Shown here in pieces: positions 35,521-47,500 of a stretch of 64,000 nt of DNA. Source of the DNA: Stylophora pistillata (lineage: Eukaryota); assembly GCF_002571385.2 (NCBI RefSeq), contig NW_019217814.1, forward strand, positions 155,509-219,508. The letters run 5' to 3'. Positions within the stretch are counted from its first letter, which is position 1. Every line of letters begins with the position of its first letter. The notes below the pieces were generated by a model. It searched no databases, was not told where the DNA came from, and was given only the letters and a program-made list of their open reading frames with translations. The position numbers and the translations under genes are program-made.

Positions 35521-37649
35521 TAATATTGATTGGTTGATTTTAAAATGTTAGCGTAGACGATAACTGGAAGTAAATAGACCTTGTCAGCTACACGGTCAAG
35601 TGGTTTGAAATGAGTTTAAAAAAAAATTCAAATTGGACGAAATTCCTACTTCTCTTGCCACGCTCTGGTTATATGATCGGCGGCCAGTCAAGGTTCTCAA
35701 ATGACTAAATGATATATATTTTTTAATTAACCAAACAGAAAGAACTACACTATCCAAACTTTTATACGTCGACGAGGAGCTACTAAGCGATCCCGAAGTG
35801 ATTTACAAATCTGATCTCCAACGCTCACTGACTGCGTTTCCTTTTATGTCATCTCCGGTCANNNNNNNNNNNNNNNNNNNNNNNNNNNNNNNNNNNNNNN
35901 NNNNNNNNNNNNNNNNNNNNNNNNNNNNNNNNNNNNNNNNNNNNNNNNNNNNNNNNNNNNNNNNNNNNNNNNNNNNNNNNNNNNNNNNNNNNNNNNNNNN
36001 NNNNNNNNNNNNNNNNNNNNNNNNNNNNNNNNNNNNNNNNNNNNNNNNNNNNNNNNNNNNNNNNNNNNNNNNNNNNNNNNNNNNNNNNNNNNNNNNNNNN
36101 NNNNNNNNNNNNNNNNNNNNNNNNNNNNNNNNNNNNNNNNNNNNNNNNNNNNNNNNNNNNNNNNNNNNNNNNNNNNNNNNNNNNNNNNNNNNNNNNNNNN
36201 NNNNNNNNNNNNNNNNNNNNNNNNNNNNNNNNNNNNNNNNNNNNNNNNNNNNNNNNNNNNNNNNNNNNNNNNNNNNNNNNNNNNNNNNNNNNNNNNNNNN
36301 NNNNNNNNNNNNNNNNNNNNNNNNNNNNNNNNNNNNNNNNNNNNNNNNNNNNNNNNNNNNNNNNNNNNNNNNNNNNNNNNNNNNNNNNNNNNNNNNNNNN
36401 NNNNNNNNNNNNNNNNNNNNNNNNNNNNNNNNNNNNNNNNNNNNNNNNNNNNNNNNNNNNNNNNNNNNNNNNNNNNNNNNNNNNNNNNNNNNNNNNNNNN
36501 NNNNNNNNNNNNNNNNNNNNNNNNNNNNNNNNNNNNNNNNNNNNNNNNNNNNNNNNNNNNNNNNNNNNNNNNNNNNNNNNNNNNNNNNNNNNNNNNNNNN
36601 NNNNNNNNNNNNNNNNNNNNNNNNNNNNNNNNNNNNNNNNNNNNNNNNNNNNNNNNNNNNNNNNNNNNNNNNNNNNNNNNNNNNNNNNNNNNNNNNNNNN
36701 NNAGATAGTGATTCATGGTCATGATCGAGTATATAGCGGTGTTCTGCTTGCTTGCTCGTTAGCTTGCTTGGTTAAGGGGGCTCGAAAAAAGGTTAAGCAC
36801 CACTCTAGCTAGGCAGATGAAAACAGGCTCCTATTCATAAATACTAGGGCTCATTAAAACGCTACCGATGACTAGAGAACGGACATAGTAGACTGAAGAA
36901 GTTTATTTCTTTGCATTATGAATAATTCCATTTAAGATCAAAAAAATGTTCAAATCACTTTTCAGATCTGGACCATAAAAGTTGTCGGAGAAACTTCATT
37001 CTATCAATAAGAATTTAGCCCGATAATTCATGATTCATTTGTAATTTTCTTTCGATATCAACATTTCAAATTCTAACTTTCATTTTGTAAGTAATGATTC
37101 CCAAGTTTTGAACACGAAAATTCATGGTATCTTCCCCATGGTCCTTCTTATTTAATCACTGTGATTCATTCTTGTTCGTGGTTCATGATTCCGCTTTCAT
37201 CTCAATCTGCTAACGGATGTCGTAAAAAAGACCTATTTCAATCCATTTGAAGTATCGACAGATGCTTCTTTAGAATTATAAGAAAGCTAAGCGAGGTTTG
37301 TGACTCTACATTTTCCGCCACTTAAACGATTCAAAACAATGGATTGGAAGATGTATGAAAACAATCAAAGCAATGACATGTGGATAATTTTTTGGCATAT
37401 TTTTCCTTTTTCCTTTAGCATAAGAATGATGACTTTTTTTTTATAATACATTACTTCAATAAATTGACGGTGGTTTATCAGAAAGGTCAAAATATTTCTG
37501 CGAGAGGCTTGTTGATAGGACCCCGGTGCGCGTGATATCGAAAAGCGCGGTTGCACAGGCGTTCTCTGTGACGCAACGTTTACCATTTCCCGCGAAATTG
37601 TAAAAACGATAAAACAGTATTTAAGAGATCAGATTGAAAAATTTTGTTA

Positions 37650-40600
37650 ATGGATCCAGAGGAAGTGAAAGTTGTTGGTAAGGAGCGATTTAGTACAAAA
37701 TCATACTGCAGTCATGGAGAATATAACTTTACCTTTCTCGCTTTTTCTTGTTCGTAGTTTATGCGGCTCGAAATCTACAGCCCAAGAAAGGAGAAAGTAA
37801 GTCGATGTGTCTTCCACACCCAGTGTGAAGTGTTTGCGCGTGGGTCTCCATGTTGTTAACAAAAACTTCTTGTTGTAATCTTCCAGGTGTATGTAATGCA
37901 TCGGTTGTTTTTGGCATTGGCAAGCACAAATATCGAACGGAGTCCGTTCGAGACAACGATCCGACTTGGAACGAGGAAACTACGATGTGAGTGTCATGTT
38001 TCTTGTTATTTTCTTTGAAAAAATACGAATATATTGATATCATCAATTTTGTGTTCATTTCTACCAAAGAGAAAATTATACTGGAATATTCGATAAATGG
38101 TCATAGAAATGAACAAAAGGCAATAATTCTGTCTGAAATATAAGAACCATCCTTCTAAATGCGAATTAATTGTGCTTTTCTTATGTAAATCAAAAATCGA
38201 AAGTTAATGCTAAGCAAACAGCGTCATTTCATGCTTTAAACAATTTTAATCAAGGCGAAAGGAGTTACTGACTTGTTTAATTTTTTTTTAATTGAAAGTT
38301 CTTTATTTCTGTTTGGTCATTCGCCCATGCCGTACTGATGAGCGAAAACTTCGTATTTATCGGAAACTGTAATAACGATTTATGGGACTGTTTCTGTATA
38401 TATTATCTATTCTTATACTATTTACGTTAATAAGAAACATCTGCCTTTAAATTTTGGTCTTTCAAGACTAGTGAACTGTGATTACACATGTTTTTTTATC
38501 CTTTCACTAGCTCTGGAGAATTGGTATCGAGAATTCATAATTGACGCTGGATAGTTACAATCTCCAATCACTCTAAAGCTTCTAACACACTTTTACTAAG
38601 GAAGATTCAGCCAAGCTCACCGAAAAAAAAAAATACAAACAACTCAGATCGAAAGGAATCAAAACAAAAAGAAAACAGTAGAAAAAAAAATATCAACGCA
38701 ACTTATCTTAAATTTTACCAAAAAGAAGGGAACAAAAGTCACGAAACAATTAAAACTAAAGATCACGTTGATTATACGTTATGCAAATTATCTTAGTGGT
38801 AAACAGTTGAGAAGGGGGGGAGGGGTGGGGAATCGACAGGTTATTCTTGGGACTAGCTCTCGCTCATAACGCGTCTCCAAAGTATTTCAAAAATTTGCAC
38901 CAATGTTAAAAAAATAATCTCTTATTTGTTCTCGCTCTTTTTAATGAGTTCGTTTGTCCAAATTGACTCAGTTTCTTTTAAGTATATCTGTATTCACTGA
39001 CACCTAAGGTCAAAAACAACAGCCAAATTTTTTCAATACTACACCGTCTTGTTAATGTTGTTAATGATGAACTCGCAAAAGTGGGTGACTGGTTGGACGC
39101 AAACAAACTTTCTCTTAACACTAGTAAATCTAACTTTGTTATTTTCCATCCTTACCAACGCAAATTGGACTACATAGTTCACTTGAAAATTTATAATAAC
39201 GATCTTAAAAAAAGTGTATCTCTAGAACAAAAAACTTTTGTGAAATATCTAGGAATTCTGATAGATAATAACCTCTCTTGGAAGTATCATATTGATTATA
39301 TCTCATCTAAAGTTAGTAAAGGAATTGGTATAATTGCCAGGTTAAGACATCTTGTCCCATTTGCCACACTTCTTAACATCTACCGCTCCTTAATTGAACC
39401 CTATATCTCTTATGGTCTTATTGCCTGGGGACAAGCTGCTAACACTCATTTAAATAAGGTTCTCATTTTACAAAAACGTGCTCTACGACTAATGTATTTT
39501 GCGGATAGCAAAACTCATAGTGCCCCGCTATTTGTTAACTCCAGAATCTTACCAATAACTATGCTCTATTCTCATTTGGTTTCCTCTTTGATGCATGACA
39601 TTGATAATCACCGTGCCCCGTCTAATATTTCTATGCTCTTTCTCCACTCCGAGCAGGTTCATCACCATTTCACAAGATTCTCAGCAACGGCTAATCTATA
39701 CGTTAAAGCGTCTAGAACTAACCAACTTTTATTTTCTTTTGCTAGAATAGGTGTAAGATTGTGGAATAGCATCCCAAAAGAACTTCGTATTAAAAACAGA
39801 ACCCCGTTTAAGCGTGAACTTAAAAATCGCCTGTTAAAACTTTTGGAAAATGAGGAGATGAATGTTGATATACGCTGCTCAGAAATTTGTAAATATCTCT
39901 TGATAAAGTAACTCTTCGTTTAAGTCTTGTTTCAATTGTATTATATATCTTGATANCCATGATGAATAAGTCTATCTCAACGGGTATTTATCCCCATCTT
40001 TTGAAGCATGCCAAAGTAATTCCTATCTACAAATCGGGAGACGAAACTGATCCATGTAATTACCGCCCAATTTCCCTCCTTTCTGTCTTCAATCGATTAT
40101 TTGAGAAATTGATGGCTAAACGTCTTAAATCACATTGCGAAAAAAATGGTATCTTTTTTACTTCTCAATATGGATTTAGAGACAAGTGTTCAACCCAACA
40201 TGCAATTTTAGATATCTTAAGCAAAATTCAAACTAATATTGATGCAAAGTTATTCTCTTGTGGTATTTTTATTGACCTAAAAAAGGCATTTGATACGGTG
40301 GATCACTCAATCTTACTGCACAAATTATATCATTATGGAGTCAGAGGAATAATTAATAACTGGTTCTCTTCGTACTTGTTGAACAGGAACCAGTCGACTC
40401 AAATTGGTTCAACCGTATCGAATATAGAAGAGATAGTTTGTGGTGTCCCTCAAGGGTCTGTACTTGGCCCCCTTCTCTTTTTGATTTATGTTAACGACAT
40501 TTACCGTTGCTCCCAGATTTTTGAGTTTTACCTATTTGCTGACGATACTAACTTGCTTTATTCAAACAAAGATCTTAAGGATCTTGAAAAAGTTGTTAAT

Positions 40601-43600
40601 GATGAACTCGCAAAAGTGGGTGACTGGTTGGACGCAAACAAACTTTCTCTTAACACTAGTAAATCTAACTTTGTTATTTTCCATCCTTACCAACGCAAAT
40701 TGGACTACATAGTTCACTTGAAAATTTATAATAACGATCTTAAAAAAAGTGTATCTCTAGAACAAAAAACTTTTGTGAAATATCTAGGAATTCTGATAGA
40801 TAATAACCTCTCTTGGAAGTATCATATTGATTATATCTCATCTAAAGTTAGTAAAGGAATTGGTATAATTGCCAGGTTAAGACATCTTGTCCCATTTGCC
40901 ACACTTCTTAACATCTACCGCTCCTTAATTGAACCCTATATCTCTTATGGTCTTATTGCCTGGGGACAAGCTGCTAACACTCATTTAAATAAGGTTCTCA
41001 TTTTACAAAAACGTGCTCTACGACTAATGTATTTTGCGGATAGCAAAACTCATAGTGCCCCGCTATTTGTTAACTCCAGAATCTTACCAATAACTATGCT
41101 CTATTCTCATTTGGTTTCCTCTTTGATGCATGACATTGATAATCACCGTGCCCCGTCTAATATTTCTATGCTCTTTCTCCACTCCGAGCAGGTTCATCAC
41201 CATTTCACAAGATTCTCAGCAACGGCTAATCTATACGTTAAAGCGTCTAGAACTAACCAACTTTTATTTTCTTTTGCTAGAATAGGTGTAAGATTGTGGA
41301 ATAGCATCCCAAAAGAACTTCGTATTAAAAACAGAACCCCGTTTAAGCGTGAACTTAAAAATCGCCTGTTAAAACTTTTGGAAAATGAGGAGATGAATGT
41401 TGATATACGCTGCTCAGAAATTTGTAAATATCTCTTGATAAAGTAACTCTTCGTTTAAGTCTTGTTTCAATTGTATTATATATCTTGATAACTTTGCAAT
41501 TGATTATTTAATTATTCAACGGACTTAATTTTATTTTATTTTATTTAACAATTGTATTTTTATTTAATGATTATCTTTGTTTAATTGTATCGGTATGTGA
41601 TCATTAGCAGAGACAGCACTTGTTTTAGAAGGGTGGCCCGCCTAGAATAGCTTGCTAATTGCGGGTCACCTAGGACTGTGATAATATTGTATTGCTAACA
41701 AATAAATAAATTGATTGATTGAAATTGAATTGATTTCCTGAATTGTATATCTAATAGTACCATCACTCCATTTTGTTTCTTCTCTCAGAAAAGTATCCAA
41801 ACCAGCTGCACTGATATTTACAGTGATGGATCGAGAGGAGTCCCTTGGAACAGTGAGTTTACCACTTGCACAAATTCCCTCCGTGGCTCATCGTCGCCGA
41901 TGGATTCCGTTGACGACAAAAAATTCTCAAGCTATGGGCGACTTGTGCATCGACTGTTGGGTCCTTTCCTTCAAGAAGGCTGGAGAGGGAAGTAAATGGA
42001 ATGCCTTGATACCTTTAGTGGGCCGTATAGGAGGGGGCGGGCGAGATCGGTCCAAAAGAAGAGCCTCGATTGAAGCTGCTTCTATTTCTGTGAAAGGATC
42101 CAGGTCGATAGAAAATTTATACTCCAATCCTGCGCCTAAAACTGACATTAATTTGGATGCTACGAACCCATTTAAGAATCCTGACCCTGGATCGCCAAGT
42201 CCCAAACTGTCTCCTAAATCATCGTCCAGTGCCACAAATTTAGCACCCCTTGCTTTGTTCAAACCCCGTCTCGCTCCCACTTTGGGTCAGGTACTGTCCT
42301 CCAGTCGCGCTCCGGAGATTACGGGACTTTCTCCAAAAGCGGGTCTTTTGTCTGGTGGCACACGGATTACAGTGCGCGGTTGCAACCTGGGTAACTCAAA
42401 AGATGATATAGTATCTGTAACTCTCTGTGGCTGTGACCTGTACTCCACACTTGAATACCACAGTCCAGCAAAGCTTGTGGTTGTAACGAAACCTTGGAAT
42501 GGCTCCGGACCTGTTGTAGTGGAAACGAAGTCTGGTGGACGTGGTACATCGACTCTCAATTTTACATTTCAGGATAAAGCTCCAGGTGGGTAGCCATATA
42601 AGTAGCCATTGATTTGGTTGTAACTATTGTTTTTTTTTTTTTTTAACCCTTAAATATGGTATGAAGATGGGCTGTACTGCCCTTTGCAGATCAGACATTT
42701 AGATTAGAGTCGGTACACGACTCCATGGGGAAAGTTTTGTGCGAATATACTGGTATGCCTAAAACTCCTTGCCACTTATAAGGAATACACGCGCATAATA
42801 GGTGCCTGATGAAATCAGGAATTAAAACTTGCCACCAAAGAATGAATCATTGCTGATGAAATAATCAGAACAGAGACCTTAATAAGGACAGAGATGTTTT
42901 AATTCTCAGAAGTCCCAGCTTTGGCAAGCTTATGACGAACTCCCCAGGAAGTTATCAATATCAGAAGGAAACGTTTTTTTCAAGTTATAGAACTAAAGTT
43001 TTAATCGTCTGTGTCACTTTTGTCATGTTTATTCTCTCTTGTATTCCATGACCTCATTGTAGACGTTCTCTAGATTTCTTAGATTTGGCTGAATCAGCCA
43101 TTTTCTCTTTCGTGTGAATTAAAATCTTTTTCCGTCACATGAGTTCAGTTCAGACTTTCGCATCGTAAGAACAAACCGTACGAAAAATTAGCAAAAACCT
43201 TTGCGTAACTGCGCCTAATCATTTACATTTCTATAGTAAAATATGTCTTTATAACCTCAAAATTGAATTTGTGACGAAGACACTTCTTAAATAACTTCAA
43301 TTTACGCAGCTTTGTATCATTCAAAATGTCATTTGTGCGGTTAAATCACTTGTTATTATGACAACTAGCCATGACATCACACCAGAATACTTCCCATGTT
43401 ACTAAAATTATTGTGTCCAAACTTGTTAAGAATCGTAGTATACTTACCCCTAATAATTTAAGGACTAAAACAGGTCAAACATAAATGATATTGTCAATTG
43501 TCGGTTTTCCCTTTGGAAGGAAAAGCCTTTTTGGAAAATTTTAAAATGCCTTCAGTGTTGGACTGATTAATTTTTTTCGGTTTTTACACCATGATCAACA

Positions 43601-43964
43601 GCGTCAAGCAAAGCGTCGAGCAAAAAAGATAAAGCTTCACGTGCTGAACTTTTAACAGAAATAACTCAACTAAGAGAGGTGATAGATGGTAAGTTTATTC
43701 TCTTCAATTAATCATTGTAATCGGTGATGTTTCCACTTACGATAAAATTAGGAATTGAACTCCTTCAACTACTGCAGTTGTTTCAATTCAAAGAAAATTT
43801 TGTTAAGTATGAGCTGGAACATAAATTGGTAAAGTTCTCTCTTCTTTTTTATTTCAGATTTGGCTGACGAGAATCGTTCAATGAAGATCTACATAGATAA
43901 ACTAATGATGATTCTCATGGAAAGGTTTCCAGAAGTACTAGAAAATTTAGGTTCTTCTCTCTAA
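37650..43964 (+). CDS. Rab11-FIP-like protein: N-terminal C2, central Sec5/EXOC2-like IPT/TIG domain, C-terminal FIP Rab-binding domain (385 aa); exons 37650-37677, 37758-37796, 37887-37986, 41789-42585, 43602-43688, 43858-43964
   Basis: GT-AG splicing gives one open frame: MDPEEVKVVVYAARNLQPKKGESVCNASVVFGIGKHKYRTESVRDNDPTWNEETTI (C2) ... PEITGLSPKAG..TRITVRGCNLG..VETKSGGRGTSTLNFTF (IPT) ... SRAELLTEITQLREVIDDLADENRSMKIYIDKLMMILMERFPEVLE (FIP-RBD with YID motif). Confidence 0.82.
39057..41735 (+). mobile_element. Young CR1/L2-group LINE (RT domain and 3' UTR) in intron 3 of the Rab11-FIP-like gene; 3' part appears twice
   Basis: Uninterrupted ~495-aa RT ORF (YRPISLL, DLKKAFDTVDH, GVPQGSVLGP, LFADD), 3' hairpin at 41632-41670 and a short (TTGA)n tail. 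Confidence 0.9.
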
Positions 43965-44559
43965 GGACAAGTGTGTACAAGCTAGAAGAATTTTTTTTCT
44001 ATTAAGAATATGTAAGCCAAGCCAAAATGAACAGTTTGCTAATCAGTGTTAGCTGATGGAGCACACGATGCAGTTCATTTTCCGTTTTCGCAAAGCGAAT
44101 AAAATCCCTTGGGCACTCTTAAATTTGAATTTAGTCAACAGGCTGATCAGTGAAAGGGGAATTAATCTTTTCCATTCTCACACTTATGCCACACTAACCA
44201 GGTGAAATTGATTAATAAAGCTCAAAATATAATTTCAATGGTTCCTTTCATTATCGAAAAACTGAAATTATTGCATGGTTGTCAGTAACCGTGTCACTTC
44301 CAAAATATGCTTACGTAATTCTTCACCACTCCTCAAACGTTCGGTCTGTTACGGAAGATTATAATCAAACAATTATCTATTGTTATAAAAGCAAACTTTC
44401 TAGGTGTTTCTTCAGGATAGCGTCTTCCCTATTCGAAACAGTTGGCCAACTTGGCTCAAATTGCATTATTGAACTTCCACTTACAAATTGTGGCCAGATA
44501 TAATCAAATAAAAATCAATGAATAATTTCCAATCCCTATGCGTTAAAAAACCTTATGAG

Positions 44560-47500
44560 TCAAAATAAGGCGTCTTTAATCGGTGACAACTTTACCATGA
44601 CCACCCCTGTGGGATTTACTTTGGCACTAACGAAATTGGTAAACTGACCCAAGTCTTTACCAGCAAACAAGTCTCTGGCAGAGGCTGTCTTCGATGTCAA
44701 TCCAATCTGTAGCACCAAAAGAAAGAAAGGTGTAGTTGTTTGTAACTCTGATATGTTGTTAATTACTGGCTAAACTTTTATGTAAAAGCTCTACAGATGT
44801 GAAAGTGTTAAAACTATAGAATTGTTTCTTGTTCCAAGTGCAATCAACTCTTAAACAGCTCTTTTCCCTTCCTCCCTTAAATTCTTCCCGTTACGCAATC
44901 CAGACGAACATCTTAGAGGGTTTCAGAGGAGTAGCAAATATTGTATAGGGTGGTTGGCCTTTAACGTGCATGACTCAGGAACACAGCTCCATAAAAAAAT
45001 TCCTTTGATAACAAAGTACTGTCAATTCCCACATACCAATTCAAAATCAGCTTTGATTTCCTGTGCTGAGTCTCGGTTGCGATTAAACAGCACGGCAGCC
45101 ACACTGCCATTAAACAAAGCACGTGACCAAACTTCTACATCTTTTTCAGCGAACTGTTGAGGTAAGGACAACATAACTTAAGAGGGGAATACAGGGTTGA
45201 TTATGGAAAGAGTTGGGTCGTTGACCATAGAAATTCCTCATGAAGACCTAGTCCATCACCATCACAGTAGCTATGGTCTTCCCCGTGCTGTTAGCACGGA
45301 GCTAAAACAATGACTAAATGTCTTATTAACGCATGGTATCAAATCTCAGCGACGCTGTTTTGAGAATCATCGAGCAATTTGGCCACTGATGTGGATAGCG
45401 TTTGGTGTGAGGATGGAATTTATGCCTTTTGTCACCGTATGAATTTTTAAATTAGAGAGACTTAGCAATGCGTTTACGTGAAACGTGAACAGCAGAAGAG
45501 ACCACGTGAACTTGTTTTTCCCGCCATTTTTTCACGATTGCCGGTTGCGCTTTGCAGTTTCTGCGTGAAAGTAACCTGTTTCACTTTTGCCGTGCACGTA
45601 AAAATTTTCTTCACTTTTTTTTCTCACAGAGTAGAAGTTAATTGCCGGAAAAAGGGCGCCAAAACTATTCCTTGTAAGTCACACAAGGGCGCCTTCAAGT
45701 CCACTATGACGTGAGCTCCCGCGAAGCTAAAACAGCAAAGTTCGCAACATTTTACGTTAAACTTGAAAGGGCAAGCTGACGTTTGCCGTTTCACGTAAAC
45801 GCGGTACCAAATCTCTCTTTTAACAAACAGATTTCATGTTTCCATGCGTCTGTTCAGGACTAAATCACAGATGACGTCAAAATGTAGTAAGAACAAAAAA
45901 GGTGGCACACGAGGTGCATCCCAGTGTGCCACAGACGCTCTGAGCACATTGTGACGTCATCTGTGATCTGTTACTGCCGGAACAGACCTCCGGCAGTATA
46001 GAATTTATTGGTTTTATATGATAAAAGAGAAAATGTTGGTGAAGGTGATGTCATCTATGTGTCTCCTCCAGTAGTTCATTGGAACAATCAAAATGCAAGT
46101 GTACTTTAGCCTATCATGTGACATAAAAAAGTATACACACCACTCTTCTCCCCATTTTTCCCAGCTTGTCTTGATCAACAGCAATTACTTCTCTGATGGT
46201 AAAAAGCACAAGAGTAAAATAGTGATATTTACGACCTTAAAGCTAACAAGTAACTCAAACAGCTGAGTAGCCCGGCCAAAAGGACTTAGTTCTTCAGGAT
46301 TTTCCTCACTTGTAGGATCTCACCCCAACTCATCTGTTGAACAATGCATGTTAAACGATGCGATGATTACCTGTTTAGAAGAATGTCTTTGGCCTCCTTT
46401 GAGATGTTCCTTAAATCATTTGACATGATAAGTGGCTGTGCATTAAAATAAAGACATGTGATCAACCAGTATTTAATAAATAGGTATATAGAGACATAAG
46501 GGTGTAATGTAATACGAGGTAGTGTTTTATGGTTTGGTGACATCAGAAAAAAATTATCACTTCATTCCTCTATGGTGTACAATTTATGGCGCACAATCTG
46601 AGAGTGCATTCTCCCTTACGGCCTACAAAGAAAACAACTTTTGTAAAGAAATTCCTTTAAAAGATCAGACATTTCCAAAGCTGACCATCTTCGTTTTCTC
46701 CTTCGGAAATCGTCTATGTTCCACAGCAAAAGAAAATCCAAGGGCTGAAAATCCCGAGGATCGGGGCACTCCCTGGTTGGCATTCCCGACCGTTTATTAC
46801 GGTAAATGTTGAGAGCAGATTGCTTGTCCAAGGCGTAAAAATGCCTGACATACGCAAGGATGTCAAAAGATTCAATCCTGGCTTCATCTGCTTAAACGTA
46901 TCACTTGTGCGATATACAGTGACGGGGAAGAAGGCTAAACTCACTGCAGCTAGGATTGACCAAAGTGCAAACTGTGCTTTAGATTGTTCGTAGTTCAGCC
47001 CAAAATTACCAATGACAAGCTGTACAGGTAAATCAAAACAAAACTATTAAAAATGTATGAATATGAGTGATTTCCCGAATACCATGTAATTTGTTGTATT
47101 GAGAACCAAAGTTGTTACAGCGGCCAATCAGAACAAAGAACAAATCTAATTACCCTCAACCGAGGGAAACCCATAATTACGCATGTTAATGAACAAGTCG
47201 TGATTGAGGTTAGTGTTGTGTTGTCTCTGGTTGGTTGAGGATGTAGCGCGAATTCTCTGAATCAATCAAAAAGTAAAGTAAAGCTAAGCCAATGAGATTC
47301 TAATTTACGTTGAACAATTGGGTGAACTATCAAGTGAAAGCTACTCTAAGTAAGGTGTATGTCTAATATATTAATGACTTGGTAGTGATCATTCGTTACA
47401 AGCCGGCTGGTTTAGCATTTTACCATGTCTGGGTCATTCCAGTGCCCAGGTCCCGCTGCTGGAACGAACGTGTCTTGGTTCTCCGCAAAATGATCCAAAA

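Follow-up and report, generated by a model that had tools for sequence, protein, structure and literature searches.

Class I Rab11-FIPs (FIP1/RCP, FIP2, and FIP5/Rip11, as well as Rip11 of Drosophila) are built from an N-terminal C2 domain, a mostly disordered middle, and a C-terminal helical Rab11-binding domain (RBD) with a YID motif, while the exocyst subunit Sec5/EXOC2 carries a Ral-binding IPT domain at its N-terminus (PDB codes: 1UAD and 1HK6). To our knowledge, few direct effectors of Ral have been described, and we know of no described FIP with an IPT domain between the C2 domain and the RBD. On the current view, it is the exocyst that links Rab11 carriers with Ral. The present study concerns a gene of the coral Stylophora pistillata which appears to join these modules in one chain. 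It lies at 37650-43964 on the plus strand of a 64,000-nucleotide (nt) window (assembly GCF_002571385.2, contig NW_019217814.1, positions 155,509-219,508 of the forward strand), and coordinates are window positions unless another contig is named. By homology and modelling, its product is probably a cytosolic trafficking adaptor of 385 amino acids, with the layout of a class I Rab11-FIP and a Sec5-subtype IPT domain, which would tie Rab11 carriers to active Ral.

The C2-IPT-RBD gene is real and expressed. Six coding exons were read off the sequence, all on the plus strand and with all five introns bounded by GT..AG, and the coding sequence of 1158 nt specifies 385 amino acids followed by a TAA stop. 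Exon 1 (37650..37677, phase 1) encodes MDPEEVKVV, and the orthologues open with MDPEEVKVVVY. Exon 2 (37758..37796), between introns of 80 and 90 nt, contributes the first strand of the C2 domain (VYAARNLQPKKGE), and exon 3 (37887..37986) its middle part. Intron 3 (37987..41788) is 3802 nt long as assembled. Exon 4 (41789..42585) completes the C2 domain, at about 41972, and then encodes a Ser-rich, disordered linker and the complete IPT domain; as these share one exon, their connection does not depend on any splice junction. The C-terminal helix starts in exon 5 (43602..43688, ...RAELLTEITQLREVID), and exon 6 (43858..43964) encodes the core of the putative RBD (NRSMKIYIDKLMMILMERFPEVLE) and the stop codon (43962-43964).

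Transcript evidence covers every joint. The Logan contig L001 (2067 nt, 99% identical) aligned to the window in exactly these six exon blocks, and it is a cDNA because 2067 nt cannot hold a gene of 6.3 kb. Its alignment over 37599-37677 places the beginning of the 5' untranslated region at or before 37599. The database protein on L001, P0001 (380 amino acids, 99% identical), agrees with the predicted joins; its call begins at a GTG that lies five codons inside the same frame. P0001 was used as the full-length proxy in the searches below, and the window exons were searched individually. RNA-seq data from several studies, both contigs and raw reads, were compared with window positions 41500-45200. 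In the polyA RNA-seq contigs X3, X4, and X1, the loose end ahead of 41789 is the final 30 nt of exon 3, and the same three contigs, together with two raw reads of the stranded run X24, cross the GT..AG joint 42585->43602; the joint 43688->43858 is present in X3 and X4. The first-pass annotation of this window had spliced the six exons into a 385-residue protein and had named a missing connection of exon 4 to exons 5 and 6 as a ground for refutation. Exons, intron ends, cDNA, and RNA junctions now agree on that model, and the connection is present in RNA.

The IPT/TIG domain (42312..42572, plus strand) is assigned to the Sec5 type, as PDB sequence search, fold search, and phylogenetic tree all rank Sec5 first. 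It was recognised by Pfam TIG at 40-42 bits (41.9) over residues 164-249 of the open reading frame (ORF), and the corresponding region of the predicted structure (residues 222-317) is modelled with a predicted local distance difference test score (pLDDT) of about 95. This structure was built with AlphaFold2 from an alignment of thirty family sequences (A3), and it follows the numbering of P0001, as do the residue ranges given below for the helix, the C2 domain, and the linker. Against the PDB, phmmer matched Sec5 (1uad_C) over the entire domain at 1.6e-17 and plexin-A1 over a part of it at 3.2e-10, and a profile of the family matched Sec5 with 99 bits in one domain. With the full-length model, Foldseek placed 1uad_C first (E 5.3e-9, template modelling score 0.89, root-mean-square deviation 1.4 A, 40% identity) and 1hk6 second. 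In the alignment to rat Sec5 1uad_C, the Thr of PEITG (42312-42326) corresponds to Thr11 and the Arg of TVRG (42369-42380) to Arg27, which we take to be a Ral-contact residue of Sec5, and the decamer TKSGGRGTST (42525-42554) is identical. These residues and the type of the domain are as they had been read in the initial annotation.

A maximum-likelihood tree was constructed from 96 IPT domains, including only two bona fide Sec5 rows (Corallochytrium P0135 and an animal N-terminal fragment, P0150) and no vertebrate plexins. It separates a group of 49 domains (39 FIP-IPTs, the two Sec5 rows, and eight unassigned fragments) from 44 domains taken from the closest multi-IPT proteins, with an ultrafast bootstrap (UFBoot) of 99 and an SH-like approximate likelihood-ratio test (SH-aLRT) value of 90. 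The multi-IPT side also takes in three long-branch extra IPT copies of ichthyosporean members, namely copy 1 of Amoebidium and the two of Creolimax P0085. The first-pass annotation had left the choice between Sec5 and plexin kinship to such a phylogeny, and the tree puts the coral domain on the Sec5 side, apart from the multi-IPT domains. The position of Sec5 inside the FIP/Sec5 group is left open by this tree, and a word-indexed search with the Corallochytrium Sec5 IPT domain (P0135, region 1-100) recovered no further Sec5. Arg occupies the Arg27 column in 22 of 39 FIP-IPTs, in both Sec5 rows, in all eight fragments, and in only 3 of the 44 multi-IPT domains; less discrimination is seen in the Thr11 column. 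FIP-IPTs also retain the generic '..SGGT' loop, where animal Sec5 is two residues shorter.

The window IPT domain (42294-42592) was modelled in complex with GTP, Mg, and residues 8-181 of P0204, a coral Ral with 95% identity to that of this genome. In each of three runs the complex scored 0.87. Among solved complexes 51 of 78 attain this mark, against 2 of 108 among mismatched pairs, and here it may reflect memory of the solved 1UAD; the best of three controls scored 0.01. The runs had at least 83% of contacts in common, and the pLDDT of the partner was at least 91. In the confidently predicted interface, Ral residues 32-33, 43-50 (T-K-A-D-S-Y-R-K, switch I/strand 2), 64-67, and 75 face IPT residues 10-17 (TGLSPKAG) and 28-29 (RG), which is the Thr11/Arg27 surface of Sec5 against switch I of Ral. 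According to a passage of 10.1101/2025.08.28.672893 that cites Fukai 2003, Thr11 of Sec5 hydrogen-bonds with Tyr36 of RalA, and T11A reduces the affinity. Tyr33 of the coral Ral corresponds to this Tyr36. The model, which is no measurement, supports that the coral IPT domain can dock on Ral in the manner of Sec5, and on balance we lean towards the view that it binds Ral.

The C-terminal region is predicted to form a single long helix (residues 330-378, pLDDT about 90). The RBD-FIP family (PF09457) scored 23.3 bits in exon 6 alone, which equals the Pfam gathering cut-off, and 20.9 bits, under the cut-off, at this gene in a genome scan; the orthologues scored 20-33 bits, some of them 28.9-33. 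Searched against the PDB, the family profile matched the RBDs of FIP1 (4d0g_C, 5.5e-6), FIP3 (2d7c_C, 7e-5), and FIP2 (3tso_C and 2gzd_C, about 1e-4; 1.2e-4 for 2gzd_C), and these matches come from its last 45 or so positions (370-417). The YID motif is present in the window (YIDKLMMILMERFPEVLE), with the Y and the D at least 90% conserved in A3 and YID kept in most members, and the longer motif YID-x-L...ME..PE.LE is conserved from nucleariids to corals. By homology, we accept this helix as a FIP-type RBD, which would imply Rab11 binding.

At the other end of the protein, Pfam C2 matched residues 2-92 with 51 bits, and residues 1-116 are modelled as a beta-sandwich with pLDDT >90, for which Foldseek also gives C2 matches. 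Loop 1 of this domain is without the usual Ca-binding aspartates. The three-domain call (C2, IPT, and C-terminal coiled coil) that had been made earlier is upheld. The linker between C2 and IPT (residues 117-221) appears disordered (pLDDT <50), and within it lies a conserved motif, RRASIEAASISVKGSRSIENLY (42057..42122, plus strand), in which one Ser (S155 of A3) is invariant in the thirty family members from nucleariid to coral. The RRxS of this motif is of the basophilic-kinase type, and from its sequence we infer only a resemblance to a regulated phospho-site.

Taken together, the domains suggest how such an adaptor would work. As in FIP1/2/3, the C-terminal helix would form a dimer that binds Rab11-GTP on vesicles of the recycling or secretory route, and the C2 domain would bind acidic membrane lipids. 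The IPT domain would bind Ral-GTP in the Sec5 mode, its first strand (TGLSPKAG) pairing with switch I/strand 2 of Ral and the Arg of TVRG lying alongside. In this way the protein would tie Rab11 carriers to places where Ral is active, acting alongside the exocyst or competing with it.

Several observations weigh against this adaptor reading. In full-length P0001 the RBD-FIP match drops to 16.8 bits, under the cut-off of 23.3. Searches of the PDB and the Atlas with the C2 domain returned generic C2 domains and clusters only, without a specific match to a solved FIP C2. Molluscs have V or I, and other members E, in place of the Arg27 equivalent; since this residue is replaced in some lineages, any Ral binding would not be uniform across the family. 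In the complex modelling, close relatives of a true partner pass regardless of binding, and Ral was the one Ras-family GTPase covered, so the model says nothing on specificity. All functional claims on the coral protein rest on homology and modelling. Of the dual Rab11/Ral adaptor proposed in the first-pass annotation, the Ral arm is supported by a complex model at 0.87, which falls short of a demonstration as it may echo 1UAD. The role in symbiosis that the same annotation had raised stays speculative.

These points bear differently on the other explanations. It is barely credible that the six exons were put together in error, say through a chimeric contig or a false join between adjacent genes: the tail of L001, beyond about 44560, is a probable chimera with a convergent transcript of the minus strand, as the CT..AC ends of the junction 44706->45037 suggest, but the five coding junctions are all GT..AG, in frame, and supported by RNA across several studies including raw reads, the C2 and IPT domains share an exon, and an equivalent architecture was independently predicted in more than 20 named species. 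A second explanation takes the C-terminal helix for a generic coiled coil, and the protein for a C2-IPT scaffold functionally unrelated to the Rab11-FIPs. The coral scores, at or below the cut-off, would fit this, as would the weak matches of other coiled-coil families. On the other hand, orthologues reach scores above the cut-off, the family profile in the helix region matches RBD chains of Rab11-FIP1/2/3 only, the extended YID motif is retained from nucleariids to corals, and the helix stands at the extreme C-terminus as in all FIPs; we consider a generic coil quite improbable.

It is also conceivable, although we hold it rather unlikely, that the IPT domain is Sec5-like by descent only, and that it binds something else (a lipid, itself, or a Ras-family GTPase other than Ral) or serves as a rigid spacer, so that the protein would be a Rab11-FIP with an extra module and no link to Ral. 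The Arg27 column is not R in 17 of 39 FIP-IPTs, some members have two or three IPT copies, the generic 'SGGT' loop that is shortened in animal Sec5 is kept, and the complex model may merely repeat the known structure. Against these stand the retention of the Thr/Ser, the Arg, and the TKSGG strand in cnidarians, sponges, deuterostomes, and unicellular relatives, the docking of Ral on exactly the Thr11/Arg27 surface with a score far from that of the best control, and Sec5 as the nearest solved structure both by sequence and by fold. The reading of the coral protein as an adaptor between Rab11 carriers and active Ral is the one that we prefer.

The architecture is not confined to Stylophora. A HMMER search with P0001 over 1.84 billion cluster representatives gave 279 matches at E <= 1e-10, and among the best 150 of these several dozen carry C2, one to three copies of IPT, and RBD, as judged by family hidden Markov models (HMMs) and confirmed with Pfam in a sample. 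The members, which are 50%-identity clusters, are spread over Opisthokonta. Scleractinians are represented by Orbicella, Porites, Acropora, Montipora, and Oculina; other cnidarians by Nematostella and the octocorals Paramuricea and Dendronephthya; sponges by Ephydatia, Oscarella, and Sycon; molluscs by Argopecten, Crassostrea, Liolophura, Sinanodonta, and Gigantopelta; and annelids by Owenia and Paralvinella. Further bilaterian members come from the nemertean Tubulanus, the nematomorph Gordionus, the crinoid Anneissia, and the hemichordate Ptychodera, and unicellular ones from the ichthyosporeans Amoebidium and Creolimax, from Pigoraptor, and from the nucleariid Lithocolla. Among the nameable clusters no vertebrate, arthropod, or nematode member was seen, which is not proof of absence. 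By this distribution, C2-IPT-RBD proteins appear as an ancient opisthokont family and not as a coral-specific one. The rarity that had been implied earlier does not hold, since the architecture is widespread in Opisthokonta and catalogued in databases; what does hold is that a full-text literature search found no description of a FIP with an IPT/TIG domain.

The names that members bear in NCBI and UniRef are 'uncharacterized', 'hypothetical', 'C2 domain-containing', and, in error, 'Exocyst complex component 2'. The last name is given by UniRef to P0038, P0048, P0063, and P0067 (Paramuricea, Paralvinella, Owenia, and Sycon), none of which has a Sec5 domain, and it was spread by their Sec5-like IPT domain. 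The Sec5 helical domain (PF15469) was found neither in P0001 nor in any orthologue scanned; the protein is therefore not an exocyst subunit. P0115 and P0132, which by BLAST gave the impression of C2-IPT-Sec5 fusions, were rejected since Pfam finds no Sec5 domain in them. In the oyster (Crassostrea/Magallana gigas), the entry P0178 (266 amino acids) is 89-97% identical to the flanks of P0334, the C2-IPT-RBD protein of this oyster, and skips its residues 191-363, that is, the IPT domain and the next linker. Molluscs may thus make an IPT-less isoform of classical, class-I-like type; the alternative is an artefact of the gene model.

One possible evolutionary scheme, which we put forward tentatively, is that C2-IPT-RBD proteins are a hitherto unrecognised, ancient, pre-metazoan and opisthokont-wide class of Ral effectors that couple active Ral directly to Rab11 carriers without the exocyst, that their IPT domain shares a single origin with that of Sec5 by domain shuffling, and that the family was lost in vertebrates, arthropods, and nematodes. 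If true, this loss would account for the family having escaped study, and its occurrence in nucleariids and ichthyosporeans as well as in corals, molluscs, and a hemichordate would date a Rab11-Ral bridge before the animals. One chain of 385 residues would then connect the two GTPases directly, in a way that lends itself to easy testing. The family, catalogued and widespread, has remained undescribed, with no member seen in the usual model animals, and several database entries named 'Exocyst complex component 2' actually belong to it.

The genome also has a canonical Sec5/EXOC2 gene on contig C208 (about 211200-235600, minus strand), whose IPT domain is split over two exons (MRPPPVVTGISPAEGPPGTKVIIRGEHLG... 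and ...VIVTTRSGGQGSCTVQF), with the PF15469 exons downstream; the two IPT exons entered one alignment as separate fragments. Because this gene is separate, the window gene is not a mis-assembled piece of Sec5. In place of the TKSGGRGTST shared by vertebrate Sec5 and the FIP-IPT, the coral Sec5 has TTRSGGQGSCTV, and it retains the equivalents of Thr11 and Arg27; over this decamer, vertebrate Sec5 resembles the FIP-IPT more than it does the Sec5 of the coral. The Ral gene of this genome (C14:878831-879637) has only two coding exons, and its 198 amino acids include YEPTKADSY as the effector loop and CEIL as the CAAX box. Its best database match is only 95% identical, versus 99% for the FIP gene. 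Further RBD-FIP loci are found at C437:190746-190859 (57.7 bits) and C147:186375-186455 (25.8 bits). The former, with a weak match to the Rab11-FIP3 domain (PF25450) 4.4 kb upstream, is probably a class II FIP; the latter reads …LKQYLDQILKVIL…. A six-frame HMM scan of the 20 kb upstream of both loci found no FIP-type C2 domain.

Within the window, a convergent minus-strand transcript (43732-45154) overlaps the last exon and the 3' untranslated region of the FIP gene. The CT..AC ends of the junction 44706->45037 are GT..AG on the minus strand, and in the stranded run X24 the mates of reads over 43732-44723 are oriented oppositely to those of exon 4. From these two features it follows that the tail of L001, which contains a minus-strand ORF (L001 1819-2067), is probably a chimera of two transcripts. 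Intron 3 holds a sense-oriented non-LTR (non-long-terminal-repeat) retrotransposon (39047-41493) in two copies that form a direct repeat, namely a partial copy of about 910 nt (39047-39955) and a longer one (39957-41493) with an intact-looking reverse transcriptase ORF (39950-41446; Pfam RVT_1, 119 bits). The copies are parted by a single N at 39956, which could be a scaffold join or could stand in a true tandem; the true length of intron 3 is therefore uncertain.

Compared with known systems, the coral IPT domain shares the IPT/TIG fold and the framework P..I..I.P..GP..GGT..TI.G.NLG with plexins, MET, and the multi-IPT proteins. These are more remote, both in the PDB search, where plexin-A1 ranks behind Sec5, and in the tree, where the split has a UFBoot of 99, and they have Arg at the Sec5-R27 column only in the three domains counted above. 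Moreover, they are extracellular, whereas no signal peptide or transmembrane segment is evident in the coral protein. The likeness to the domain by which Sec5/EXOC2 binds Ral extends to the fold, the Thr11/Arg27 positions, the TKSGGRGTST decamer, the grouping in the tree, and the predicted docking on switch I of Ral. However, the IPT domain is N-terminal in Sec5 and internal in the coral protein, which is without the Sec5 helical domain, and of the generic IPT loop the coral domain keeps the two residues 'GG', which are missing from animal Sec5. Class I Rab11-FIPs are alike in the N-terminal C2 domain, the mostly disordered middle, and the C-terminal helical RBD with YID, and the coral protein may be either their orthologue or a separate paralogue or parallel lineage. 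It is much shorter than they are, and it differs from them by the folded, Sec5-type IPT domain between the C2 domain and the RBD.

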